Below, piece by piece: positions 4,052 through 64,000 of a stretch of DNA of 64,000 nt. The notes beneath the pieces were generated by a model. It did not search any database, was not told where the DNA came from, and worked only from the letters and a program-made list of their open reading frames with translations. The DNA comes from Haliotis rubra (Eukaryota). The translations under genes and the position numbers were made by a program. Every line of letters starts with the position of its first letter. Within the stretch, counting starts at the first letter, position 1. The stretch lies in NCBI RefSeq assembly GCF_003918875.1, contig NW_025766974.1, positions 1,054,001 to 1,118,000 on the forward strand. Reading direction: 5' to 3'.

Positions 4052-4077
4052 TTACAATTTGTATTCCATGATTTCAC
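4052..4077 (-). CDS. Candidate terminal coding exon (G-EIMEYKL-stop); the alternative candidate is 3422-3370 (G-ISSIIGTMNTSTTVWM-stop)
   Basis: Acceptor cttcag at 4078-80 gives a phase-1 continuation to TAA; the sequence alone cannot distinguish it from the 3422 acceptor (tttttcag). Confidence 0.4.
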
Positions 4078-4470
4078 CTGAAGTTCAGCAAATAACCACC
4101 ATTTACGATTTTCGTATGTAACCCAATGTATGGGAACGCGTTGGTATGACGTCAGTTTTGCGAATGTGTTGCCTGGAAATTTCACACTGGACGGACAAAG
4201 ATACAGTGGATGGGAGCATTTGCTACCCTGATATGTGAACCCAATGAAGAATAATTAGGACAATGATAAATAGAGTGGTTGAAAGGTTGTGGAGAAACCA
4301 TGAATTAGAGTCGTGCTGGTACATATTTTTCAAACGTGTGAATGACTAATGTGAAATGCCCAGATGATTTTCGGTATCCGATCCGATTAAACAACGTTTT
4401 TCAACCAATCAGACTGTAGCAGACACTCCCATTAACTTTAGTGTTTGGTAACGGGCGGGGCACAACTAAC

Positions 4471-4575
4471 CTGCGAAATCTTCTCTTGGCCCGGGGGAGA
4501 CAGGTGGGCTCTCCACCCCCTCGTCATCTATGTAGTTGTCCAGGAACTGGAAAGCCTCAGCGGTTACTTGGTTCC
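4471..4575 (-). CDS. Coding exon 5 (G-NQVTAEAFQFLDNYIDDEGVESPPVSPGPREDFA)
   Basis: Acceptor ctctttcag; donor CAG|GTTAGT; 105 nt, open in phase 1-1, continuing exon 4. Confidence 0.8.
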
Positions 4576-5439
4576 CTGAAAGAGACATCACTTTTAATGT
4601 AAATCATATTCATAAAACAATCCTCAGAAACAACGTCAGGAAGTTGGCCTGTATCATGAATTGTGAAAATGCTGAAATATAATATTGTTATCATTATATA
4701 TAACCATATTACATGTATTTGACTTTTATCTGTCTAGTTTGTTCTGGGCATATCATCTTCCATCGTTGTCCTATGAACGCGTGCCCGTGACATCATATCA
4801 TCGAGTCTGGGCGCGACAACTTTAATCGGTCGTCCTTTAATCCGGTGGCGTGTGCACATCATCCGGGGGATCATCATCATCATCATCCGTGGTACCCAAC
4901 TGCGGTAACATAACAATACATCCACCATGTCAGTGACCCTTCTATCCGTTCTCGTTAGTTGCACATTACGAAAGCCGGGGGATGCTGAAGACTTTGTATT
5001 TAACCCGTGGTATTTAGATTGATCTTTTACGGTGATCATTTTTATTTAGTCAATAAACTGTTGTCACATCTTCACGGGCTATGGCTATAGTGTTCCCTAC
5101 AGATCCACGTTAGCGATCCACTGACTCGCTTGCTGTTACAGCTTTGTCTTGTGCAAGTTTGGACCCTGGTGTGAAGTGTTAATAGGACATCGCCGTACTG
5201 ACGTTAATGTCATTGTCATTGGGGTTCTGGGGTTAATTACTCTCTCTTCCGAGTCCGATGATCGAGTCGAGTATATCCTTGATTCACTAAACCAGCACAG
5301 CGACATGACCTCATATGGATCAAGGAGTATGTCTTTGCTATAACTGCACACCAACGTGCACCATGTGCAGATGCCAAATTGAGGTGAGTTCAAGATTCTT
5401 GCACCCCTACAACGACGCGCATGGACGCGTGTGTGTGTG

Positions 5440-5662
5440 GCGAGATTCGTATTGCTTGTCCACTGAGATACCATTCTCTACTGAAACTCAAACTACGGAC
5501 TCCGAGCCAACATGTCCTATTTCATCCCCTTAATGCTGAGCACCAGGCAGGGTTCCAACAATTAGAATATTTTAAAGTCGTTTGGTATTCCGCGCCCTTA
5601 GGATCGAACCACTGACACTCCGTTCTCCGGGCAGACGATCCATGTATTACAGCACGGAGGCG
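5440..5662 (-). mobile_element. Old tRNA-derived SINE with a Meta/MESC-like central domain
   Basis: Minus strand has B-box-like GGTTCGATCC followed by ACCAAACGACTTTAAAA...CCCTGCCTGGTGCTCAGCATTAAGGGG, which resembles the MetaSINE central domain as I recall it. Confidence 0.5.
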
Positions 5663-6350
5663 TTTCAAATGGGTAGAGGGCGGCAGAAAAAATACAAGTA
5701 CACAAGTCGTGTTGTACAAGTTGTTTGTGGCAGGAAATGTTTACTCTTTACATTTCAGTGCAATTAGGCCAATTCGCCGTGTCTACCCACGCAATCGGTA
5801 TGGCATGAGACCCGCGTTTAGTTAAAGCATATCGATGCTGCAAATACAACTTGTCCGAAATAGCAGTGGATATTGTCATAGACTTGTCATGTAGTTCAGA
5901 AGAGCATATTATATAAACACATCACCAAGTCATTACAGGATCAGATTTCGGTCGAGAAGATAGCTGAACAAATGGAGAGATTCATGTAACTAGTGTCAAA
6001 TGTGGAGGTTCAACCGTATAAAATATCTGTGTGAATGACGTGGGCTACTTTGTGCGGTGAATATGACAATTAAAATTAGAAATAAGGTCCAAGTCGGTCT
6101 CTCGTGTGAACCAATTAAGGTTAAATATTGACCAATCAGAGCCTCTGCGCGGAGATGTTTGCCAGTCTCGCGCAATGTCATGTAAACATGAACTCGCGAC
6201 GGTGTTTGCATTATACACAGATGATGCGAAATAAGCAACAGGTAACGTATAAAGATGACCAAAAAACCCCAATTTTTTTTATATAAAAAGTGAAATACGT
6301 GAAATTCTTGGAAATGTCCAGATGGGATTACTGAAGGTATTTTGATATTT

Positions 6351-7997
6351 GTAAATGTAGCACTACATACACACAAGTAAATGTAGCATTACATACACAC
6401 AAGTACATGTAACATTAAATACACACAAGTAAATGTAGCGCTACATACACAAGTAAGTGTAGTGCTACATACACAGGTAAATGTAGTGCTACATACACAG
6501 GTAAATGTAGTGCTACATACACACAAGTAAATACAGCGCTACATACACACAAGTAAATATAGCGCTACATACACAGGTAAATGTAGCATTACACACACAC
6601 AAGTAAATGTAGCACTATATACACAAGTAAATGTAGCACTACATACACACAAGTAAATGAAGCGCTACATACACACAAGTACATGTAGCATTACATGCAC
6701 ACAAGTAAATGTAGCACTACATACACACGTAAATGTAGCGCTACATATACACAAGTATATATAGTGCTACATACACACAACTAAATGTAGTGCTACATAC
6801 ACACAAGTAAATGTAGTGCTACATACACACAAGTAAACGTAGCGCTGCATACACACAAGTAAATGTAGCGCTACATACACACAAGTAAATGTAGTGCTAC
6901 ACACACAAGTAAATGTAGTGCTACATACACACAAGTAAATGTAGCGCTACATACACACAAGTAAATGTAGTGCTACATACTCACAAGTAAATGTAGCGCT
7001 ACATACACACAAGTAAGCGTAGCGCTACATACACACAAGTAAATGTAGTGCTACATACACACAAGCAAATGTAGCGCTACATACACACAACTAAATGTAG
7101 CGCTACATACACACAAGTAAATGTAGCGCTACATATACACAAGTAAATGTAGTGCTTCATACACACAAGTAAATGTAGCGCTACATACACACAAGTAAAT
7201 GTAGCGCTACACACACACAAGTAAATGTAGTGCTACATACACACAAGTAAATGTAGTGCTACATACACACAAGTAAATGTAGCGCTACATACACACAACT
7301 AAATGTAGCGCTACATACACACAAGTAAATGTAGCGCTACATATACACAAGTAAATGTAGTGCTTCATACACACAAGTAAATGTAGCGCTACATACACAC
7401 AAGTAAATGTAGCGCTACACACACACAGGTAAATGTAGTGCTACACACACAAGTAAATGTAGCGCTACACACACAAGTAAATGTAGCGCTATATACACAC
7501 AAGTAAATGTAGTGCTATATACACACAAGTAAATGTAGTGCTATATACACACAAGTAAATGTAGCGCTACACACACAAGTAAATGTAGCGCTATATACAC
7601 ACAAGTAAATGTAGCGCTACATACACACAAGTAAATGTAGCGCTACACACACAAGTAAATGTAGTGCTACACACACACAAGTAAATGTGGTGCTACATAC
7701 ACACAAGTAAATGTAGCGCTATATACACACAAGTAAATGTAGCGCTACACACACAAGTAAATGTAGCGCTACACACACAAGTAAATGTAGCGCTATATAC
7801 ACACAAGTAAATGTAGCGCTACATACACACAAGTAAATGTAGTGCTATATACACACAAGTAAATGTAGTGCTACATACACACAAGTAAATGTAGTGCTAT
7901 ATACACACAAGTAAATGTAGCGCTACATACACACAAGTAAATGTAGTGCTATATACACACAAGTAAATGTAGCGCTATATACACACAAGTAAATGTA
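6351..7997. repeat. 26-bp minisatellite (GTAAATGTAGYGCTACATACACACAA), about 65 units, with an internal palindrome; in the intron between coding exons 4 and 5
   Basis: Direct tandem array with 24-bp variants; ATGTAGCGCTACAT is a perfect 14-bp palindrome. Confidence 0.97.
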
Positions 7998-9346
7998 AAA
8001 GCAATGCAGAATCAGAAAATCAGAGTTTGTGTTATTAATTTCCCTTCAAATAATGTTTAATTCATCTCGAGACTACTTTACACCATCACGTGTGCTGTCT
8101 TCTGAGGCAATCTCGATTGAATTTAAAATGATAATATTTCAGTCTTCATTGTGTAAAATTAGTTATTGCGTTCATGATAGCAGAGATTACTGTATATCAG
8201 TACTATACTTTGCTGTACATGCGGGATAAACAAACTTAACGCTCAGATAGATTGCGGCGTAGTACTATATTGTTAAACTTATAGTTTCGGTGACTCACAA
8301 ATACAGTGCAATATCACGAACAGTCTGTCATTCAGGAATGACATTTCATTACCTATTGGTGAAGTTTTATCACCTTCCCATGTGTACATTTCGTTATAAC
8401 GCCCTGGGCGCTTCTACGAGTTCGGAAACGCCCGTCTCATCGCTGATTGAATCTCACAGCCACAACTACAATCGACACCTTTCATAAAACCCACAGATGT
8501 ATCCGGGATAAAACAACAACACTTTATTACAGCCATAAATCCCATCGATCATGTGTAACCTTCCCACCTCAGATGATCAACATTTATTGATGTATTTGTT
8601 TGCGAATCCTGGGCGTGGTGGTCGGACAACTGTCGGTTTAGTCAGCCTTGTAATTCCCTACGCTTAAATTACGGCCTGTGTAAGTGTGTACTCAGTCTGT
8701 CCAATCTGTACACGACATACCAATACGAAGGGGAGACAACTGCAACTGTTTTAAGACAATGTGAAATTATACCCTTCACGCTTCCTCCACAGCGAAATGG
8801 CGAGTTTATTTATCTGTTCTAACAGTGTAGGAAGATCATGTTTTTACCATTGATCGGTATATTTAACAATGCCGTAAGTTTGTTGGGATGTGCCCCCATG
8901 TCAAGTCGATGTGAAAAGGGTTTTGGAATCCGATCTAAGCATACGTGATACCATATTTCCAATATTTGCCTCGGACATTGTTTAGTGTTTGTATAATGTA
9001 ATATAATCATCAAATATAGAAAACAATTAATTTCTTTTGGAATCGGCATTCCGCACCGTCGTAGGTACAACAACTGAAAACGTCGGTGTTTATGTCCAGC
9101 TACTAACGTGAAGATATCTTCTAATGCTCACCATCATATCAACCAGTAAATGGAAAGTCAGCATTCCGGTTGTTACGACTTGGTTATAATGATATTGATG
9201 TTTGTAGTGATACATTTAGCACTGATCAAATTATCTCGTTGGGATAAACAGACTGTAATCAATATTATGTGATCGATAATGTTCGGCGAAAAATACATGG
9301 GCGAGGCCTACAGTCGAGATCTGTGGGGCCAGGAGAGTTAGACATT

Positions 9347-9800
9347 GCGAGATACTAAATGTAAGGTTAGGCATGTCGAGATACTAAATGTAACGATAGA
9401 TATGTCGAGATAATAATTGTAACGTTAGACATGGCGAGATACTAAATGTAAGGTTAGGCATGTCGAGATACTAAATGTAACGATAGATATGTCGAGATAA
9501 TAATTGTAACGTAAGACATGGCGAGATACTAAATGTAAGGTTAGGCATGTCGAGATACTAAATGTAACGTTAGACATGGCGAGATACTAAATGTAAGGTT
9601 AGGCATGTCGAGATACTAAATGTAATGTTAGACATGGCGAGATACTAAATGTAACGTTAGGCATGTCGAGATACTAAATGTAACGATAGATATGTCGAGA
9701 TAATAATTGTAACGTAAGACATGGCGAGATACTAAATGTAACGTTAGACATGTCGAGATATTATATGCAACGTTACACAAGTCAGTTCTGAATGTAACGT
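9347..9800. repeat. 29-bp minisatellite (CGAGATACTAAATGTAASGTTAGRCATGT), about 15 units, with an 87-bp trimeric higher-order repeat
   Basis: The same variant recurs at 9348, 9435 and 9522. Confidence 0.93.
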
Positions 9801-10764
9801 TACACATGTCACGACTGCTTGGTGTAGCTTTAGTTACGTCAAGATACTATATGTAAAGTCGACAAACTCGATTTACCACAAAACAGATACAAAGAGAAGC
9901 GTACGATAGTCGGGATACAAAGAGTCAGGTAGACTAAGTCACTGAATATTTATAATTTTGATTGTAACAAATAAACCTATTTAAAGTGAAAAGGAGCCCC
10001 AGGGAGACCAGAGATTCAGAGACCTGAACCTGAGGAAATCTAGACTTGGTTCATTTAGGGCTTTAGCACTGCAGGGAGGGCTAGGCTGTAGGGGAAATAA
10101 TGTTGTTCAGGGACTGTGAGACAGACTAAGAGTCAGGGGGCATAGATCTGAGTTAGCTGAGTTTGGATACATCACACAGCTAACAGTAAAACAAAATATC
10201 TGTTTGTAGGGTTCTTGCTGAGCCGACACAGCCTCAAGAATTGAACTGACACTGTAGCGTTTTGTCCACAGGAGCTTACAGCCCCAGACTAGGGATGTGT
10301 TCCACGTTACAGCCCCAGACTAGGGAATGCAGTCATGGGTCCAATAGGTCCGTGATTCGGAACCAGCTGAGAGGCGCCGCGGTCTACTTATTCATCTACT
10401 TGAGCCACATCCACGTTCAAGGTAAACAGTTAAACCTATTATAACTACCGTGTGTCAGGTGGTATAGTACAGAGAGGGCAACTCGGAAGAACTTGTCCAC
10501 AATCCCGAAACTCCCCAAGTATAAATCAAATATATACATTTACGTGGTGGGCCTATTAGTCATGTGAGGGTATTTTGAGAGGGTATTTTCATCTCCGTGG
10601 AAATGTCTTTGCACGACTTCATTATGAATGTCACTTAAACTTTTGAAAAGAGTTGAAGGTGAAATGACACAAAGCGATCGCCAGGTCAAATATTTGAAGG
10701 TTTTAATACCGTAAGACCTGTATGATTACTCCCTTTAAAATCACCGTTGTAGCCTTTAGTTTTA

Positions 10765-11030
10765 TTACTGAGATCTCACAAACAATACGAGACAAAATAC
10801 AATGTTCACGTGTTGGTCCGAGATCACCTAACTAGCATGAGATCCAAACGACTGTATACTTAAGTCCGAGATTTCCCCACCAACATGAGAAACAAACTAG
10901 AGTTCACCTGCTGGTCCGAGAGGTCCAAAACAGCACGAGAAACAAACTAGAGTATACCTGCTGGTCCGAGATCTCCAAAACAGCATGAGAAAGAAACTAC
11001 TACATACCTGTAGGCCCGAGATCTTCCGAC
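10765..11030. repeat. ~50-bp degenerate tandem repeat whose last unit overlaps the exon 4 3' end and splice donor
   Basis: CCGAG ends at 10822, 10870, 10920, 10970 and 11020. Confidence 0.85.
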
Positions 11031-11850
11031 TGTGTGGCGCTGAGAGGGGGATGAAGACTACCATCAGTTGAGTCCAGCCTCTCGCCAGTCGCAGGATGTT
11101 TCACCTCCCGCATCCCGGTCGTGATGTGGATCGAGGTGTCTGACACGTTCACTGGAACAGATGACGTCACATCGTCCACATGTGAGCTCGCACGATCCAC
11201 GTGACCTGATCTGACTTCACTGGCACGAGAAGGTACAATTTCTGTTCTGATAGAACTCGCTTTCCGAGAGTCTGCAGACCCCTCTGTTTTTTCTATAATC
11301 ATTTCTTCCATCCGGGCTACTATTGGGTTTTCATAGGCCTCGTCCTTTTGTATTCCAAGTTTATTGGGAACAGCATACACAGACCCTTCGTGCGTATAAT
11401 GCTGTGTTATAACCTCAGTCTTTACTGGTTTGGGTTTTTGCTTTTCATCGTCTGTTTTATTATAAAGGGGTCTTGTGCTCATTCCGTTCTTATCCTGCAG
11501 CTTCATGCTGTCTGTAGCAGCAGGCTGGGAAACTGTTGGTGGCGGCACTCTCACGGGAGCTTTATTGTCGAAAGCTGGATTGTCATAAGCTCCTTCCCTC
11601 AAAGAATCTAAAGATTGTGACTTTTGTTGCGAAACTTTCACGTGACCGGCTGAACTTGGCCTGGAATGGTCTTTTCTTGATTTGTCACTGTTTGACTGAT
11701 GCGAATGACCGGAATGTCGTTTAGAGTTATCCCGCCTGTCCTTGGGTCGACTACTAAGGTCACTGTGCGATCTGTGTACCTTCTTGCTGTCTCTGTGATG
11801 GCGCTCAGCAGAGTTGCGGTTAATGAGGCGTGACCGCGAGTGTGTCAAAT
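11008..11850 (-). CDS. Coding exon 4, long Ser/His/Arg-rich disordered segment (D-LTHSRSRLINR...SEDLGPT)
   Basis: 843 nt open exon inside the 304-aa ORF 11000..11914; acceptor tttcag; donor CAG|GTATGT; phase 1-1. Confidence 0.9.
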
Positions 11851-12145
11851 CTGAAATCAACGAGTTTTTGTTGTTGTACCTTATATAAAATGATACCGTT
11901 GAACACAATATCATTTCCTCTCACAAACATGCTATACTCAGCAAACTATTGCTGAGAACAGTGAAAGGACAAACATGAAAAACATCGTCTGGAAACCTCA
12001 TGGTTTCTTTAACGGGACCTTTGCTTCAATTTCTTTGTGAATAGAACCATTTACTCTGTCATGCTATACAGAATATCGACGAACGGTGTTAACATCTCAC
12101 CAGATGATAGGGCAAACATTTTAGGTTACAGACTTAGTTACTCAC

Positions 12146-12277
12146 CGTTATATTCATATATACTTATAACACCGGGTGCTCTGGATGTGTCAACCACTTC
12201 ATAGACAGGGGCCAGTTGCTGACTGTGGTATATCCTCACATTGCCCTGGTATACTGCATGGCCCGGAGGCGGGTGTG
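12146..12277 (-). CDS. Coding exon 3 (A-HPPPGHAVYQGNVRIYHSQQLAPVYEVVDTSRAPGVISIYEYN)
   Basis: Acceptor ttacag; donor G|GTGAGT; 132 nt, open in phase 1-1; not listed in this frame by the ORF track. Confidence 0.85.
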
Positions 12278-12287
12278 CTGTAAGTGG

Positions 12288-12289
<2 letters not shown>

Positions 12290-12322
<33 letters not shown>
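12290..12322. repeat. (ATC)n microsatellite just upstream of the exon 3 acceptor
   Basis: About 11 ATC units. Confidence 0.95.
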
Positions 12323-14012
12323 GATACCACCACCGACTTCATTATCAACGATGTCATTATGTTAATAGACGTAAAGCCAATCAACCTTTCTTCCCTTCGA
12401 CGACACATTAGTCGAAACAATAATAGCATCAAACAATAGAGAACTGAAGGTGAAAACACCTCTCATCATTTTACCAAAGCACGTGCAAATTTACTTTAAA
12501 ATGAAGTTTGCTTTATAAAGGTTGATAAGAAATACATACCAATTTGACCACAATCTCTCCCTTCCCCAGTTACAAATACAGTGTGAGGAGAAAGTTGAGG
12601 GACTTGGTTCTGAACCAGATAAAACTGTTGTGATAGCGTGGGAAAAGGTCTAAGTCGATATAAATGTCAATTTGCCAACATTTCTTTCGGTTTACGAAAT
12701 GAATAAAGCGATTGTGATCACGTCTAAAATAAACGACTTTCAAAACATACCCACGCATGCAAGAAAGGACTTTGAAGAAACGCTTCCTGTTATAGAGCAG
12801 CGTAATGTTTTAAAAAGGCTGTATGTGTTTGTTGCTGATCGGGCTTATTGGCGTTACATGCGGAGCTACATTAGTGAGACACCTCAACTCGATCTTTTAG
12901 CAGTTCGTAATGTTTGTTTGTATCTGCCCAAATGTTGATGTGTAAACGTATTCGTCTTAACCACATAGCCCTTTGGGGTTTACATAGTTGACAGAGCCTC
13001 AGCTCGCCAGAAACAGACGGCATTTCTGCGTCTCAGTACGAAAACACTTTTGACATTCAAAGTTTACATTCTTCTCTGAGAATGTCATTATAGGGTTTTG
13101 CTCTACAAAGGCATACACAGAGAGGATGTATGGGTAAAGTTTAAATCTCTTGATTACTTGATGGAGTCACAGTCAATGGCGGATTGTGTTGGGAACACTG
13201 TTGTATTGTACTATAATTAATACTAAACTGTACAACAGAATATTGTGGGCTTTCAGTTTCGGTTATAATGCACGTCGACACCGGGGCGTTTGACAATACG
13301 TATTGTAGTGTTCACATCAAGCACTGGGATCCGAACAATGTGTTGGAACGAAGCAGGGAGGGGGTCACAGAGTTCTACACCCAGGCGGACTATACTCTAT
13401 ACATGCTATGATTTCAACACGAGACTGAGACCTGCGTTCAGGTTACCTACACACTTGCTCCTTGTTAAGCCTCAAACAAATAGAACCACTGTTTGAAGCA
13501 AATGCTTTCATTGTGTATGAGCTCCGAGTGCCCAAAAATGGTAATCAACATTGTTCACGTAAATTCAAAACAGCCAATTTTGCTGAATGTGCACAAACAT
13601 CCCGACCGGACTAAAGTCGAAATAAATGCAAGGAGACCGAAGATGGGGTCGAACAGAAGTTTAACAGTAATTTTCAATGAGGATCGACATTAACGACGGT
13701 GTCCACAAGCGTTATCAGCTCACTAACCCCCGTTCGTTAGGATAAAGATATTCGTCTTAAAGACATAAGGCCAGATTACTGTTTTCCTTTTCACCCTTGT
13801 GTAATCAAAGCTGCTGTGTCATATGATATAAGGCAATTAAACGAAATTGCGAAAATTGGCGTAGATAACAGTATACATATTTATCCGTTAAACCTCCGCC
13901 AGACGCGATTACACGCCCTTGGTCTAGAACCCTAGCATCGGGATTACAACTGGTTTCATACATTCTATAATAATAATAGTCCACGTCCAGGATGAATATC
14001 TTGCTCAAAGCG

Positions 14013-14600
14013 CTAAGAAGGAAAAGGAGTATTCAGGAAAATGCTTGACGGAACAACTGAGTCTTGAAAAGAATAGGTTGGAGAAGTTTGTAGTTCTTGA
14101 GGGAGAATGTTCCACTGATAAGCTGCTGAATGGGAAAACGCCCGTTGTCCATAACTGCACAGTTTGACTTTGGGCGCAATGAATAGCTGTTGAGATTCTG
14201 AGCGGAGCGCTCTGGATGGAATGTAGGGCTGGAGGAGGTCACAGAGATAAGCTGGAGCAATATGAGAATGACACTGATAAGCTAGACAGAGAAGTTTGAA
14301 ATTGACTCTCTGCCAATGAAGCTCTTTGAGGATCGGGGTGATATGGTCTGATTTTGGAGAGAGTGAAACAAGTCTGGCTGCTTTGTTCTGGATTGATTGG
14401 AATCTTCTGATGCCATGTTTTGGAGAACCGGCTAGGAGGCTGTTGCAATAATCTATCCTTGAAATTATTAATGAAAGGGTCGGTGTTTTTGTAGCATCCT
14501 TGGTCAGACATGCTCTAATTTCCCCAATGTTTCTTAGCTGTAGGTGACAAGATCGAGAGGAGTGGCTAACTTGTTTGTTCAAGTCAAGGTTTGAGTCTAC
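14013..14600 (-). mobile_element. L2/CR1-group LINE fragment, C-terminal part of ORF2
   Basis: ORF 14013..14582 contains SRIDYCNSLLAG...IQNKAARLV...SDHITPILKELHW...FKL...PAYL...RALRS...YGQRAFS...WNILP, the typical L2 post-RT region. Confidence 0.9.
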
Positions 14601-14714
14601 ATTCTACTATACAAAGACACATTTCTCCGACACCATTATTTGAAAACATGCTACACGAAACAGATCATCGGGGGTGTAATAAGAGGTGTTACTGTATACT
14701 GAGTTTCAACCAAC

Positions 14715-14968
14715 CTTGCAAACGTAGCTCCGAAGATGACCTCTGAACCCCAGGTTCCACTCGATATTTGGGGTTTGGTCTGCCGTAGTACAGCCCCTGA
14801 TTGGGTGCTGCCTGGTACACTGCAGGCGCCTCAACCCACAAGCCATTCCCCACCTTAGGAAGGCCCCTGGGGTCAATATGACTGAGTGTAGAGTGTTGAC
14901 TTTGATGGCCAGAGTCAGAGGGAAGATGGTGGAACTGCTTCTCATGTCTCTTCTTCTTCCTCTTGGAC
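14715..14968 (-). CDS. Coding exon 2 (E-SKRKKKRHEKQFHH...SSSELRLQ)
   Basis: Acceptor cacag at 14969-71; donor G|GTTGGT; 254 nt, phase 2 to phase 1; lies in ORF 14689..15102; polybasic stretch directly follows the TM helix. Confidence 0.85.
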
Positions 14969-17900
14969 CTGTGAGGTGTTAGAACATCAAACAATGATAT
15001 TTGTCTCGGCATGATATCAGTATAGACTACAATACACAACACATTCGTCAGTGACTTTGTGAAACTGTTTACAGTGTCAAATATTAAATATAGTGTTGGC
15101 ACCTACACATCACTTACCACATTCTACTGGCGTTACTGGTAGACTGACTGAAGGCACACCTACTCTGGCCGTCTATATCTGTGTATTCCCACCTACGTAT
15201 GATGACAATGGTGGGAACCTGTTTAAGATTTAAGGACGTGGGTAGGTCTGATTCACCACAGAAGCACAGCCTAAGAAGATAAGATAGGAGCAATTTCGGA
15301 ACAATCTGTGAAGCTTCAGTAGTTCTCTGTGTTTGTCACGGTCTGTTTGGGGAAAGGTATGAGACACACTCAATCTTGGGTCATAAACAGAATGATCACA
15401 CTTTAAATTCATAGATCTGGCATGTATATGCTCACTATTTGCATATGTCACTGCACAAAATTGACCCTGGAGCTTGTGGAACACCTTAACAAGATCCCCC
15501 AAAACAGTTGACCCCGGAGTTTGAGGATTACTTTCAGAAGTAAATATTTCTTCATTTAAAAAACATTCAATTATTTGAAATATTTTATAAATGTGTTGAA
15601 CATTTGATGAATTTTGACAACTGTTGACAAACGGCTATATATGGCTTCAGCGCCCAGGGAGGGTATGCGACATCTGCCTGTTTAAATGTACGTACTTAGT
15701 ATTCCGATGATATTAATACATGGTGATGTAACAAGCCGCACAAGAAGTACATCTAAGAGCATTATATGGATAACTAAATAGCCATACTTAACATCAGACC
15801 ACAGAAGGATTACATTCCCACGGTTAATATAATTGATCACATCTGCGCTAAACATTTCCAACAGGTCTCAGAAGGAGAAAAAGGTCAGCAAAATATTTTT
15901 AAAAAATTTAAGTTTTATCAGTTGCTATTGTCATATATTTAACACGTTCGTCTTCATACAAAAAGATGGCTGACACGTCTCCATCAACTCTCCACTTATG
16001 ACACAGCCATCTATAGATGTGACAGTTGGATTGATTTCTGTGTCGTGACTATGCCATTTGTCACGCTAGTATGGTTATCCGGTGCTGAACAATGTAAGTG
16101 CACTGCAACAGTCAACGGTCACGGTTCGACGACAACATCTGCATTATTTAACGTCGCTCTGTGTATACCTGAAGTATATACCTGACCTACTCTCGCTGTA
16201 CAGAATATAACACACCGAATAGTGGCGTATCTCAGATGATGGATCATTTTTTACAAAATCGTTTTCGGTTTCCAGTCCATAAAAAACACATTTAAATGGT
16301 TCTGTGGGAATTGTAATTCTCATCATAATCATAGTTTCACCCAAAGACCTCAAAACAACGTCTGGTGACCATTTTTCACCAAATATATTTTACTTTTTAT
16401 TTAACATATTTGATTGATTGTATTGTTCTGCAATCACACCGCATAAATCATATTCCAACGAAACCCTTTCGTTTTGGGTCGCTACCCCACTGTCACTAAA
16501 GGGAAACAAACCCAAAAATACAAGACTAACGGATCAATCATATTTCGTCTTTAGATATAATTGCCACATTACGAGTGACAAGTTACTGCCAGGTAATTGA
16601 GTCTTTTCCCGTCAAACAATATGAGACTTCTTGCACGGAAATGTACCATTTTGGCCCTCAATGTAATCTCCCGATGAGGTGGAATAACTGCTGATAAGAA
16701 GTTTACTTAACAAGAAAACACGGAAATAGACGTTATTTCCTGCTTACATGAACAATATCGACATTCTAATTATCTAGAAGTAATGTGCATTATATACAAG
16801 ATACCAAAATATCATTTCCTATTATATGAAAAAACTGCCCTTCCATTTATCAACAAAGAATCTTCAGTGTTAAGTAAAAAATACATTCAGAAGATTCATT
16901 CAATGACGAGTAAGGTGTGATAATCAATACTACTTTGTTACCAATACATGACATGACCTGTCTCAAGTAATCACTTCATCCATGGCAGGGTAATGGAAGG
17001 ATATGCATATATGTTATGCTGATATTACTACAAATATTTTACACTAAGAATGACATTCCGCACGTATTATCGCAATGACTCCTATGTACCACCTTGGCAC
17101 CAACCTTCATCACAGGTGAGCTGGCAAATACCACGGAGACCGTCTAAATGACAAGATACAAGATGGCAGAAACTGGGGCAACTAATAAGCTCCAGATAAG
17201 CTTCAGTGTACATACTTATATCAACATATAGAAGGCACTTCAAAAAGAACGTATTCCAATGAAGGGAGAGTTGCGGTAGTAATGTCAACACTTAGGCTCT
17301 CAGTATCATCACACAGGCGTCATGACGGCTAATGGTTGCCGACCACGCCATTTACTCCATTACGTGGTACATGCACAGCTTTACACCACGGCTAAACCCC
17401 TTTTTCATCTACCATTGCTAATGGTTTTGGTTGGAAAGACGGTCATTCGATACCCCTACACTTATAGCTAAACGCAATACTTTGGCAATAAAGGCTGTTT
17501 TGGTCCAGATCGTATCATCCTGGAGCCAGCGACGTATGTATATCTTACTATAAAACAAATTCTCTCAAAATCTGTTTACATATGAATGTTGACTACTTTA
17601 TATACCAGCACCATTACCGGCACAATGTAATGAGGTCGAATATATTTTAATGATGCTGATTATTTCATAAAAAAAAGACATATAATTCCGACTGAGACGT
17701 CTAATGTGCCACGAAACTTAAATGTGGGCCAACAAATAAGACTAGTGATGTATGATCCTGTCGAACATCTGTTTAAACGAATGGTTTTGCTGTACATTAA
17801 TCTTGCAATGAATTTAAAATATTTAAAAACATATTTTGATACATATATTTGCTAAAGATAAAGGAGAAAATTATTTGATAATTGCTTCATGCAAAACATT

Positions 17901-17971
17901 ATTCATAAATTAAATGGATTACTTAAACTCATTGGTCTTTTAGAAGCTGGTGATTATTTGTAGAAACTCAC

Positions 17972-18069
17972 TCGCAAGAGCAGCAGATGATGCAGGCAAT
18001 GACGCTGATGATGAGGATCCCGCCCCCAACAGAGCCGCCGATGATGTAGCCGAGAGTGGCGTCATCCAT
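17972..18069 (-). CDS. Coding exon 1 of an uncharacterised single-pass (type III-like) membrane protein: MDDATLGYIIGGSVGGGILIISVIACIICCSC
   Basis: ATG at 18069 in context AAAAAC-ATG-G; acceptor tgctag just upstream (exon starts 18081); hydrophobic TM helix followed by CIICCSC; donor GA|GTGAGT, phase 2, matches the next exon. Confidence 0.85.
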
Positions 18070-21000
18070 GTTTTTTGTTACCTAGCAACATACACAATGA
18101 CATAACATCAATAAAACCATACGAGCATTTTTTTGCAAAAGGTCGGGAAAGTAATTAACAATATGAAGAGTTCAAAATGTCACGAAGTGTTACTACCACA
18201 GTCTCAATTTGCTCGTTATTAAAGTACTTGATGACATGTTCTTTGATGTCATCCATCATCTGGGAACTAAAAACAGATGGCACGTTGATGAAGCACAAAA
18301 CGTTTTGTCTCATTATACTAAAATCAGTCACCTTCTCATCATATTACCACAAGGTCATTAAGATAATCATTTTGCCCAACTGTATGAAATACACGTATTA
18401 GACACAATTGAAATAAAAATACACATGCACATAACAAACACAAAAGCACACACACACACACGCGCTCCCCCCTCCAAAATGACCCCAAAAAAATTAAACA
18501 CCCCCCAAAAAACCCAAACAAACAAAACAAACAAAAACAAAACAAAACAAAAAAACAAAAAAACAAAAACATAATTAAATCAGTGAAAGATCAGACACTT
18601 TCGTTTTAAATCAAAATAAAAGAAACGGGTCGAGCTGTTTTCAAAGTACAAAATATGGTCAAACTGCAAATCTCATAAAATACCTGCACTGTTCGATACC
18701 ATGTAACATCTGTTGCATTCTGAACCTATTTCATACATATCAAATCAGCTCCTTGAAGACTTTGACAAACTTCCAAATACCCCCATGACCAAATGAGTTC
18801 GACACAGCCGTGTTTGTTGCCTGTGTGTTATATAAACCTTTCAAGAAGGGAATGTGAAGTACGGAATATACTATTCGAGATTATGTGCATATGTAGATAT
18901 ACCAAAAGGCTCTCGGCACTATTCAGGAACAGAATGTTATCCTGCCCTACTGAAAAGAACCAGGTTAATCTATGCCTGGATGAACATATTGATTTGAACA
19001 GCCAATAAACAAACGCCTTAAATAGATATGTCAAGGGCTTGACAACGATCTCTTTGTTCTCGGTTTTATCCGATGAATATACACAAAGCTGTTTGATAAA
19101 ATCAATTTCGTGTGAATCATAAACAAATTTTGCCATTGTATAATATTGATGATAAATATACGTTGACATTTTTTGCACTATGTCTAACAAATTCCTTCTT
19201 TGAACGAAAACAATTGACAAACAATACAGTATTGACGTTGTTAAAGGTTCTCGAATTTACTGATAGCAATTTTGCAAAAAACTTGAAAATTTCATTGCCC
19301 ACTTTTATTTCTAGGCAGTGTCCACAAACAGGTTCGAAAAAAATGAATGTGAACCAAAAAATTAATCACCTAAAGAATTTGAATTATTTGAAACATGAAA
19401 GAAATACACTGAGTGTGTCACTCTCTCTGATTCTAGCCTTCGCGGTGACATTTTGAATTTTGGCGTGATATTAATATAAAATAATATGGTCACTCCATTT
19501 TCAGCTAATTTTTAAATACTATTTCCTCTCCTCCCTCACCAATTAAAGGGAATTAAAACAACCACAAAATATCAAATGGTCGTTCCCTTTTTGAATATGT
19601 AAATATACGTGAAACGTTAGTAGGTTGAGCTCGTCTTTCTTGTATCATTCAGGGTTAGCTAAAGGGTGGTCTTAACAATGCTGTACATAGCCAGGTATGA
19701 ATGAACCCTAATTATGTTTTCAGGCTGTGGACTATACAGTTTAATAACACTATTTTCATGGTATTGTGCATATCCTTGACCTAGCTCAAAGGTTGCATGA
19801 CATGAATCTGAATGAGCATTGAAGAGGCTTTCCAAGAGCATTGCAGTTTCTGACACCAGTGTAGTGCGTGAGTAGAATTCCAGGATGGCAAAACAGCGTG
19901 TTTCAATTACGACAAGTGTTATTTACATGAATGCGTCACAACGAGTATTTCGTTTCACGGTTTTCATTTCCATCAAACATTGCATTATTTATTAGGAGGT
20001 AGGTACAAGTGCACAATGAACTTGTATGTGGTGGCAGAAAAAATATCAACCTCGAATTCGTACATATCTGTGATATTCCAGACACGACTCCGTGTTGGGA
20101 GTGACTACGTATTTGTACATAGAAGAGTTTAAAGAGCTGTGGATATGTATGGGGCAAAACATCCTAAAAACGTACAAAAAACGAAGTATCACGACGCTCG
20201 AATATTGCCAAATAGAGGGATTCTTTGTCAATAGTTTTTTCATATAAAATATTATAATTATTTGTTTTAGGTGCCAGTTATCACGAATTCTAAATTCCAT
20301 TTGCTGTTAGAGATACACATCTCCACACACGGGCATTCGAGGTGCCATATTAAATGAGTGGAGATTGGCTACATACCTTAAATGGCTGCGGTGGTCACTT
20401 ATCATCATAAACACTATACATCAGTGTCACGGTAAATTCCTTGTTACACAGTTCTTTCTCTCGTCTATGTTATACCTTGTCCCGCCACACTCCCATAAGT
20501 TCCAGGGTTGTACTCATTCGCGCGCGACGGTGTAGTAATGATCGCCTGAAGAAACCATGTAGTCACACCAGATCATCAGCGAATGGCGACAATATTCAAC
20601 TCGGCCGCATCACACAGATTCAATGTACACAGGACTTAACATATCAACATTTGCTTCCCATTTTGGACTTAAGTATACTGTCGTAACCTTAGCATGTATT
20701 CACATCAAGTCATGTGGTCAACTGGCTCAGTCATTGGTTCGTGATGTCGTCTGCTTGTCTCGTGCACACCTGTCGTCTGCTTTGGCAGCTACCGCGGGAT
20801 TTGCGGGGTTCGATTACATGTGTTCGGTCTCTCTATTGATTTGTTGAGGAAATCTTTGCTGAGAACATTTTACACTGACAAGTCGGGTAACTTTAGCCAT
20901 GTGGGACGAATCATTACTGGCCGCTGTTACCGGCTTATCGCAGTATACCCCACACCTTTGTTGTAGTCTACAGACTAATACCACAGTCTTGGGTTGTGTA

Positions 21001-24760: not shown

Positions 24761-25127
24761 ACTAACAAGACTATACACTCAGCACGACTGAACATTCCGC
24801 CAACTCCCCATGCTATAGTTACCTAACTATCGTGTCCTCCTTGAAAGAATTCAGCTGGTCACATCACTGGTACTATCGACGCCAAGTGTTTGCTGAGAGA
24901 TCACGCCCTTTCAGTGACGGACTGACTGGACAACATCATCCGGAATGACTGACATGGGGCCATTTCTGGTCATTTCTGTTATGTAACGCGGTAAGCTATA
25001 CTATGTCTATTTATAACGGTAATGTTGCAGATTACAGCGTAAAAGCAAATTTATTCAATCACACTCGCATGTCTCTCGCAACCACCTACACCTGGTAATT
25101 TAGGTTTCTTAATAACAACCATTTTAG

Positions 25128-63872: not shown

Positions 63873-64000
63873 CTCACGAATAAAAAGAAGTTGTTATCCA
63901 TAAAGTTTGTTCTATATTGTACTTCCCAACTTCTAACATGCCACTCCAAGAAGTTTCCTAGTATAATGTAATAAGATGACTTTTAGAAATGATTGAACTA

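Follow-up and report, generated by a model that had tools for sequence, protein, structure and literature searches.

We examined a window of 64,000 nucleotides (nt) from the abalone Haliotis rubra (contig NW_025766974.1, positions 1,054,001 to 1,118,000, with no run of N anywhere in it), in which a gene on the minus strand encodes a protein of 479 amino acids (aa). The coding sequence (CDS) spans positions 18069 to 1003 of the window, totals 1440 nt, and is divided among six exons that we delimited from canonical GT/AG splice sites and from the phase of the reading frame. The gene is expressed and subject to purifying selection, and its product is a membrane-anchored protein, made up in structural models of one transmembrane (TM) helix and an intrinsically disordered tail that carries a string of short conserved linear motifs. 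The features of the gene are as follows.

18084-18082, minus strand: in-frame stop codon TAG, four codons upstream of the ATG, read directly and kept in Haliotis rufescens
18069-17972, minus strand: coding exon 1 (98 nt, ending in phase 2), encoding the initiator Met, a 7-aa stub, the TM helix with GGSVGGG, and CIICCSC
14968-14715, minus strand: coding exon 2 (254 nt), encoding the polybasic SKRKKKRHEK, the conserved island IDPRGLPKVGNGLW, Y84, and the Haliotis motif NPKY
12277-12146, minus strand: coding exon 3 (132 nt, phase 1-1), encoding GHAVYQGN, the invariant RIYHSQQ, PVYEVV, and SIYEYN
11850-11008, minus strand: coding exon 4 (843 nt, phase 1-1), encoding the disordered middle of the tail
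4575-4471, minus strand: coding exon 5 (105 nt, phase 1-1), encoding GNQVTAEAFQFLDNYIDDEGVESPPVSPGPREDFA and the first base of a Gly codon
1010-1003, minus strand: coding exon 6, a micro-exon (GT TAT TAA) that completes the Gly codon and adds the C-terminal Tyr and the stop
1002-1, minus strand: probable 3' untranslated region (UTR), deduced from transcript length

Intron 1 lies in phase 2 and introns 2 to 5 all lie in phase 1, so exons 3, 4, and 5 could each be skipped with the frame kept. Exon 4 encodes KKVxRSHSD, AYDNPAF, ATDSMKLQDK, NKTDDEK, HYTHEGSVYAVPNK, and AYENPIVARMEEMI. The peptide of exon 5, bounded by the splice sites tttcag/GG and GCAG/gttagt, includes the invariant AFxFLDxY island and agrees, by sequence comparison, with the orthologous proteins and with the corresponding exon of H. 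rufescens. The exon structure as a whole is that of the NCBI model of H. rufescens; rebuilt in that genome from exons of 98, 254, 132, 846, 111, and 8 nt, the gene translates exactly to its database protein.

Public sequencing runs provide the transcript evidence. Exon 4 was found wholly or partly in 18 runs from six studies, and four runs were aligned to positions 12140-18139, an interval that covers exons 1 to 3 only. One of the four, X15, is DNA-type and covers the interval throughout, as genomic DNA would. The other three (X1, X2, and X4) are RNA-type, small, drawn from a single study, and without tissue labels; their contigs sit on the exons only and skip the introns, which confirms exons 1 to 4 as spliced RNA. 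The splice joint 17972/14968 is present in all three (aligned as joint 14966/17970, cut +2), exon 2 is represented by pieces at 14715-14966 in X1 and at 14715-14833/14869 in X2 and X4, and exon 3 by pieces at 12146-12277 in X1 and X2. The contigs continue past 12146 into a loose end whose letters, reverse-complemented, are the opening 30 nt of exon 4 (start 11850).

The N-terminus of the protein was a point of doubt in the preliminary description of this DNA, which had called for RNA-seq confirmation of the ATG exon and had named upstream in-frame exons encoding a signal peptide and ectodomain as the outcome that would overturn its account. Exon 1 is in spliced contigs of all three RNA-type runs, and a 2860-nt contig of X1 that matches the genome from its first letter starts at 18083, which leaves 14 nt before the ATG, although the 5' end of such a Logan contig is no proof of a transcription start or cap site. 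The frame upstream of the ATG is closed by the TAG at 18084-18082, unless the AG of this codon serves as a splice acceptor. Among 23 aligned relatives, taken from NCBI models and from open reading frames (ORFs) of de novo transcripts, 17 begin with Met and 5 to 9 residues that lead directly into the TM helix, and the remaining six start as the Met-Asp-Cys form discussed below, as a truncated model, or as a fragment. The in-frame TAG, the contig start, and the like starts of the orthologues thus all speak against an upstream coding exon or signal peptide, neither of which we found.

The 3' end required revision. The gene had been placed at 4052-18081, with its end at 4052; the CDS instead ends outside that interval, in the micro-exon at 1010-1003 (cag/GTTATTAA, acceptor 1012-1011), which gives the protein end ...FAGY. 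A pattern scan downstream of exon 5 for AG/GNTAYTRR returned this single site, and H. rufescens has the acceptor and the 8 nt without a single change, at its annotated CDS end. The C-termini of gastropod orthologues read ...GY, MY, or DY. We rejected a candidate last exon at 4078-4052 (minus strand, acceptor 4080-4079, ending ...GEIMEYKL before a stop at 4052): H. rufescens has AT in place of its acceptor AG, and its peptide GEIMEYKL occurs in no orthologue and does not fit the orthologous C-terminus. Once the 14-nt leader and the 1440-nt CDS are subtracted, ~1400 nt of the X1 contig are left, so positions 1002-1 are probably 3' UTR, and we assign the stretch 206-2521 to intron 5, the micro-exon, and this probable 3' UTR.

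The architecture proposed in the preliminary description was borne out on the minus strand, from the 7-residue stub without a signal peptide and the single TM helix with GxxxG to the juxtamembrane Cys cluster, the basic run, and the long tail with no recognizable domain. The N-terminus MDDATLG is followed by a hydrophobic helix with GGSVGGG (G11xxxG15 and G12xxxG16), CIICCSC occupies residues 27-33, and E-S-KRKKKR spans the junction of exons 1 and 2. The protein contains 17 Tyr, 16 of which (about 15 had been counted) are in the tail, together with the motifs VYEVV, IYEYN, AYDNPAF, VYAVP, AYENP, NYIDD, and EAFQFLD, all of which had been listed. A Pfam scan of the exons assigned the tail of ~446 aa to no family at E<=1, and the same search of eight full-length relatives yielded only sub-threshold matches to TM-juxtamembrane segments (Orthoreo_P10, EphA2_TM, Syndecan, and TM_ErbB1; E = 0.007-0.1, below the gathering scores). 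The TM and disorder prediction that had been called for gave a concordant picture: AlphaFold2, run on an orthologue of 475 residues with the 23-sequence alignment, predicts one TM helix at residues 3-33 (predicted local distance difference test score, pLDDT, about 88-95) and no other hydrophobic helix. Two short helices, NPIVARMEEMI (337-349) and AEAFQFLDNYI (444-455), have block pLDDT of about 60-69; no further structure is predicted, and 344 of the 475 residues score below 50. Because two Asp precede the TM helix and six Lys/Arg follow it, the positive-inside rule puts the tail on the cytosolic side and the N-terminus on the outer one, and we infer a type III (N-out, C-in) single-pass topology. 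Of the 17 relatives with an intact TM exon, 16 have at least one Cys where the helix meets the cytosol, and the TM sequence A-I-I-G-G-S-x-A/G-G is common to gastropods and bivalves.

The protein belongs to a family that spans the molluscs. Its members include the following.

H. asinina: 475 aa, 90% identity over exon 4, E = 1e-157, "uncharacterized protein"
H. rufescens LOC124137241: 482 aa, 86% identity over exon 4, E = 1e-148, "uncharacterized protein"
Gigantopelta aegis: 529 aa, 38% identity over exon 4, "uncharacterized protein"
Other gastropods: Lottia, Patella, Littorina, Nucella (two paralogues), Babylonia, Pomacea, Lymnaea, Bulinus, Aplysia, Plakobranchus, and Elysia
Bivalves: Argopecten, Pecten, Ostrea, Crassostrea (LOC105341834), Saccostrea, Tegillarca, Pinctada, Sinanodonta, and Solemya
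Cephalopods: Argonauta

A HMMER profile searched against 1.84 billion representative sequences matched 34 proteins at E<=1e-3, 27 of them at E<=1e-10. Every named member is a mollusc and is labeled "uncharacterized" or "hypothetical," with cephalopod members matching at only about 22-26% identity, and neither the profile nor the protein database searches, one of which was saturated by low-complexity words and added little, gave any relative outside the molluscs, the matches being molluscan or unlabeled. Ten LOC or locus-tag identifiers of family members had no mention that we could find in the literature. The claim that the protein is lineage specific and undescribed has therefore held up, and the family is unnamed and unstudied, though NCBI gene models exist. 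Against H. rufescens, the number of synonymous substitutions per site (dS) is 0.30 and the ratio of nonsynonymous to synonymous rates (dN/dS) is 0.18 overall, and by region it is 0.09 over residues 1-165, rises to 0.25 in the middle, and falls to 0.06 over the last 39 residues. The spliced RNA, the overall dN/dS of 0.18, and the size of the family exclude the reading that the locus is not a gene at all.

Within the 23 aligned sequences, conservation is limited to short islands between variable, low-complexity spacers. The islands of the N-terminal part (where Φ is a hydrophobic residue) are DPRLPKVxxxGLW, ΦY84, VY127Q, RIY134HSQQ, PVY143ExΦ, and ΦY158; those of the middle are KKVxRSxSD, ATDSMKL, NKTDDxK, and HY313xYxGx(I/V)Y320AxPxK; and those of the C-terminal part are NPIxxRMxxM and GKxITxxAFxFLDxY457LSDDEG...SPPxSP. 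Individual islands of the tail are IYHSQQ, VYEVV, VYAVP, YDNPAF, RSHSD, and AFQFLDNYIDDE. In RIY134HSQQ the Tyr, the Ser, and their neighbors are invariant or nearly so, and the AFxFLDxY island is invariant, the C-terminal helix being kept even in cephalopods.

Tyr is the best-conserved common residue type of the tail, and its single Trp is conserved as well. At a cut-off of 75% identity across the 23 sequences, seven of the 16 Tyr of the tail count as conserved, against 43 of the 423 other positions (Fisher p=8e-4). Across the seven conserved Tyr columns there is one change from Tyr to Phe in total, which argues that the hydroxyl group matters. Y134 is occupied by Tyr in 23/23 aligned sequences, Y143 in 18/23, Y158 in 21/23, and Y320 in 13/18. 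Six of the eight recurrent Tyr (the seven conserved ones and Y320) are preceded by Ile, Val, or Leu (P about 4e-5, at 11% Ile plus Val). Residues downstream of these Tyr are fixed as well: His at +1 and Gln at +3 of Y134 in 22/23, Glu at +1 of Y143 in 16/18 with a hydrophobic residue at +3, and Ala at +1 and Pro at +3 of Y320 in 11/13 and 12/13. An aliphatic residue at -1 is typical of substrates of the Src and Abl families. The sequence (I/V)-Y-A-x-P is the Abl-type optimum, pYxxP is a ligand for SH2 domains of the Crk/Nck/Abl type, pYExΦ is of the Src-family SH2 type, and pYxxQ is of the STAT3 type.

Several relatives possess a second N-terminus for the same tail. In Littorina saxatilis, isoforms of one gene start either with the TM exon or with Met-Asp-Cys-Phe-Asn-Leu, and both isoform classes continue with KRRRKKERDQKKF..., encoded by the polybasic exon 2. 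At the Littorina locus (L007:10001-26800), the TM exon lies at 10001, an alternative first exon lies at 25083, inside intron 1, and exon 2 lies at ~26760; the alternative first exon, ATGGATTGCTTTAATTT/gtaagt, is 17 nt in length and is 15 kb beyond the TM exon. The same pairing of TM and Met-Asp-Cys starts recurs in isoforms X1 and X2 of Babylonia areolata (P0017/P0071) and in two transcript contigs of an unlabeled transcriptome (P0022/P0072), the Met-Asp-Cys first exon consisting of 5-6 aa spliced onto the polybasic exon 2. In the models of Aplysia (P0014) and Elysia (P0030) the first residues are M(D/E)CIC and a basic run comes next, and a tblastn search for a TM exon at the Aplysia locus gave only low-complexity noise. 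No Met-Asp-Cys exon turned up in the Haliotis window when intron 1 and the region upstream to position 64000 were scanned with strict and with relaxed patterns. A Cys at position 3 beside a polybasic run resembles the N-terminal S-acylation signals of GAP-43 and PSD-95, and the TM-less isoforms are probably anchored by lipid and charge. Since the interchangeable anchors share Cys plus a basic patch, the job of the N-terminus would be to pin the tail to the inner leaflet. The swap suggests that membrane tethering through Cys and basic residues, and not an extracellular or receptor role, is the conserved requirement, and it lends indirect support to acylation of the Cys cluster.

Taken at an evenly balanced degree of confidence, the reading that we favor is that of a membrane-tethered, disordered, multimotif scaffold whose Tyr islands serve as kinase substrates and docking sites. 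The tail would be held at the inner leaflet, probably that of the plasma membrane, by three elements: the Gly-rich TM helix, the S-acylatable Cys, and the polybasic patch. Kinases of the Src or Abl type would phosphorylate the conserved Φ-Tyr sites (IYHSQ, VYExΦ, ΦYxxG/N, and (I/V)YAxP), and the phosphorylated sites would recruit proteins with SH2 or PTB domains. The non-Tyr islands may bring further partners or regulation. Besides RSxSD, a candidate site of the basophilic-kinase or 14-3-3 type, these islands comprise SPPxSP and two predicted helices, one at NPIxxRM and the other at AFxFLDxY, the latter with an acidic SDDE stretch. What we propose about acylation, phosphorylation, partners, and cell type is inferred from the sequence, and the raft association and the possible immune role put forward in the preliminary description stand on the same footing.

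Several observations weigh against the scaffold reading. The Tyr motifs had been expected to be conserved across molluscs, and this holds for the seven tail Tyr described above and not for the Tyr of the two Grb2-type YxN motifs, which are poorly kept (9/23 for AYDNPAF and 5/14 for AYENP), the conserved parts of these sites being N..F and NPI..RM. The Tyr-rich middle is not shared by all members, since cephalopods retain nothing beyond the N-terminal islands and the C-terminal helix, and about half of the conserved positions are not Tyr based (LPKV..LW, KKVxRSxSD, ATDSMKL, NKTDD, NPIxxRM, and AFxFLDxY.SDDE). In the single Haliotis sequence, YxxP occurs 4 times against 1.3 in shuffles (p=0.03) and YxN is not significant; because such counts are only modestly above shuffles, the case for phosphotyrosine rests on conservation and not on counts. 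Finally, the strong conservation of the Gly-rich TM helix suggests specific TM-TM contacts that a pure anchor would not need.

In one alternative, the Tyr and Asn-Pro motifs are trafficking signals and the protein cycles through membranes or acts as an endocytic adaptor; the signals would be YxxΦ for AP complexes, [FY]xNPx[FY] for PTB domains of the Dab/Numb/ARH type, and an acidic CK2 cluster. YEVV fits YxxΦ, and YDNPAF mirrors the FxNPxY class, with its Asn and Phe better kept than its Tyr. An NPxF-type motif recurs in bivalves at another position, NPx[FY] is observed twice against 0.08 expected, and SD[DE][DE] follows the C-terminal helix in nearly all members. The invariant IYHSQ and FLDxYL, however, are not classical sorting signals, and the aliphatic residue at -1 and (I/V)YAxP fit kinase substrates better. 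We regard a sorting or endocytic role as unlikely to be the principal one, although it is partly compatible with the scaffold model and does not exclude it.

The anchors themselves invite a comparison with organizers of the membrane cortex such as GAP-43, MARCKS, and paralemmin. A protein of this kind would bind acidic phospholipids or calmodulin and shape cortical actin, for example in neurons, and the Tyr islands would be secondary. KRKKKRHEK directly follows acylatable Cys, the Met-Asp-Cys and polybasic N-terminus of caenogastropods and heterobranchs resembles those of GAP-43 and PSD-95, and the tail is predicted to be disordered by AlphaFold2. The conservation, however, is centered on the distal islands and on Tyr and not on the basic patch alone, and we recognized no IQ-like motif. 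We consider this account rather improbable.

The scaffold reading leaves the conservation of the TM helix to be accounted for, and a further proposal starts from that feature: the protein would be a signaling or auxiliary subunit of a receptor or channel, its Gly-rich TM helix packing on a partner TM helix in the manner of DAP12, FcRγ, CD3ζ, or the auxiliary subunits of channels, and its tail relaying or regulating the activity of that partner. The A-I-I-G-G-S-x-A/G-G sequence kept between gastropods and bivalves, the N-terminal dN/dS of 0.09 (the lowest outside the C-terminal helix), and the weak sub-threshold Pfam matches to the TM-juxtamembrane segments of syndecan, EphA2, and ErbB, which are dimerizing helices, all agree with this proposal. 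The TM helix, however, has no charged residue, unlike that of DAP12-type adaptors; several species have an isoform with no TM helix whatsoever; and the TM helices of cephalopods are without the GG motif. A subunit of this type is in our judgment quite improbable.

Least probable of all is that some named bilaterian protein has an orthologue here so diverged that its tail has drifted past detection by HMMER: disordered proteins quickly lose detectable similarity, cephalopod members are already at the low identities given above, and the position upstream of erlin, kept in four molluscs, would allow a search for positional orthologues, but the profile search of 1.84 billion representatives gave only molluscan or unlabeled sequences, further database searches gave only molluscs, and no Pfam family was matched at E<=1 beyond noise from the TM segment.

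The erlin gene just mentioned (Band_7/SPFH, with one exon that matches human Erlin-1 at E=7e-19) follows downstream at a distance of 6-9 kb and shares the strand in H. rufescens, Lottia, Argopecten, and Littorina (L001:36064-37263, L002:22890-26900, L003:24441-26763, and L007:57708-59097, which in our window would be beyond its start). The microsynteny is therefore kept between gastropods and a bivalve and offers a handle for finding positional orthologues. In Argonauta, Aplysia, and Sinanodonta no erlin was found in the 10 kb that follow the gene, a negative that is uninformative because the genes and intergenic regions are larger there.

Introns of the Haliotis gene contain several repeats. 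Intron 4 contains a minisatellite of 26 bp x 64 (90% matches) and an array of 29 bp x 16 (6351-7997 and 9337-9810), which account for the repetitive ORFs of the CVCSTTFT type found there. Intron 2 contains an interspersed repeat at 13940-14580, which the DNA-type run covers at 10-40 times the single-copy depth and to which diverged RNA contigs (15 mismatches) map; a 189-aa ORF on the minus strand of the same intron (14013-14582) has no Pfam match. A (TCA)n/(TGA)n triplet run occupies 12279-12334, directly upstream of the exon 3 acceptor. Over 12140-18139, the introns of run X15 are ~3% different from the window (98 differences and 41 gap letters over 3.06 kb), and RNA contigs with the same organism label as X15 have 0-2 differing positions per exon. 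The intron divergence of X15 indicates high heterozygosity or a sister taxon.

How, then, does the abalone protein compare with known systems? By definition, transmembrane adaptor proteins (TRAPs) cross the membrane once, expose only a few residues outside the cell, carry Cys next to the membrane, and extend a long tail that lacks domains and bears Tyr motifs; most of them have a juxtamembrane palmitoylation motif (PMC4861716). The abalone protein has the short stub, the single TM helix, and the domain-free tail of this definition, and the Cys cluster is present, so the TRAP-type layout that the preliminary description had recognized stands. The layout of PAG has been described, and Src-family kinases and Csk are conserved throughout animals (PMC3492796). 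From the stub without a signal peptide to the multi-Tyr tail, the abalone protein is laid out like LAT, LAT2/NTAL, PAG1/Cbp, and LIME1, and the sequence prerequisites of Tyr motifs that are phosphorylated and bind SH2 proteins can be read in it: seven conserved Tyr with no drift to Phe, aliphatic residues at -1, and fixed contexts at +1 and +3.

Homology to LAT, LAT2, PAG1, or LIME1 was not detected, either in Pfam at E<=1 or among the 34 profile matches, which contain no named vertebrate protein. LAT, PAG1, and their like are vertebrate proteins, whereas the abalone protein belongs to a molluscan family and has a Gly-rich, conserved TM helix; the LAT group repeats YxN, whereas the best-kept contexts of the abalone protein are IYHSQ, VYExΦ, and (I/V)YAxP; and, unlike the LAT group, the mollusc family has many Tyr-free islands and, in some species, the TM-less Met-Asp-Cys anchor. 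It is plausible, by analogy of layout, that the protein is a TRAP-like scaffold that is analogous and not homologous to the TRAPs of vertebrates. We found no invertebrate counterpart of the transmembrane adaptors described in the literature.

Two further groups of proteins share parts of this design. With its lipid-plus-charge anchor, the Met-Asp-Cys-x-x plus Lys/Arg isoform of the relatives would attach the tail in the manner of FRS2-like lipid-anchored docking proteins, and GAP-43 and PSD-95 are likewise anchored by N-terminal Cys and basic residues. The mollusc protein, however, has no PTB, PDZ, or IQ domain, and the TM-less isoform is the one that our scans did not find in the Haliotis window. 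The TM segments of syndecan, EphA2, and ErbB and the p10 protein of orthoreovirus are Gly-rich (GG/GxxxG) as well and are followed by a basic juxtamembrane region, with Cys in p10. The abalone protein, which matches them in the TM segment only, has no ectodomain, no glycosaminoglycan sites, no kinase domain, and no conserved syndecan C1/C2 boxes. Membership in the syndecan family was rejected: the best matches score 13.9-15.9 bits against a cut-off of 25.2, cover the TM helix only, and come with no ectodomain.

Transmembrane adaptors are organizers of signaling in the lymphocytes and mast cells of vertebrates, and gastropods, bivalves, and cephalopods split from one another in roughly the Cambrian. 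If the scaffold reading is true, an independent mollusc family with the TRAP layout would represent the convergent evolution of a signaling solution and would provide mollusc immunology, neurobiology, and aquaculture with an entry into tyrosine-kinase signaling, the handles being a small set of invariant motifs and a natural swap of TM and lipid anchors. Should the Tyr motifs prove not to be phosphorylated, the family would still be a conserved and well-defined orphan, with motif islands that call for partners. A bolder statement we offer only tentatively, with the balance of our judgment against it: that this is the first TRAP-class phosphotyrosine scaffold family outside the vertebrates, one of independent origin that has been kept across gastropods, bivalves, and cephalopods, that carries two interchangeable anchors, and that would act as a hub from Src/Abl kinases to SH2 and PTB proteins in molluscan cells.

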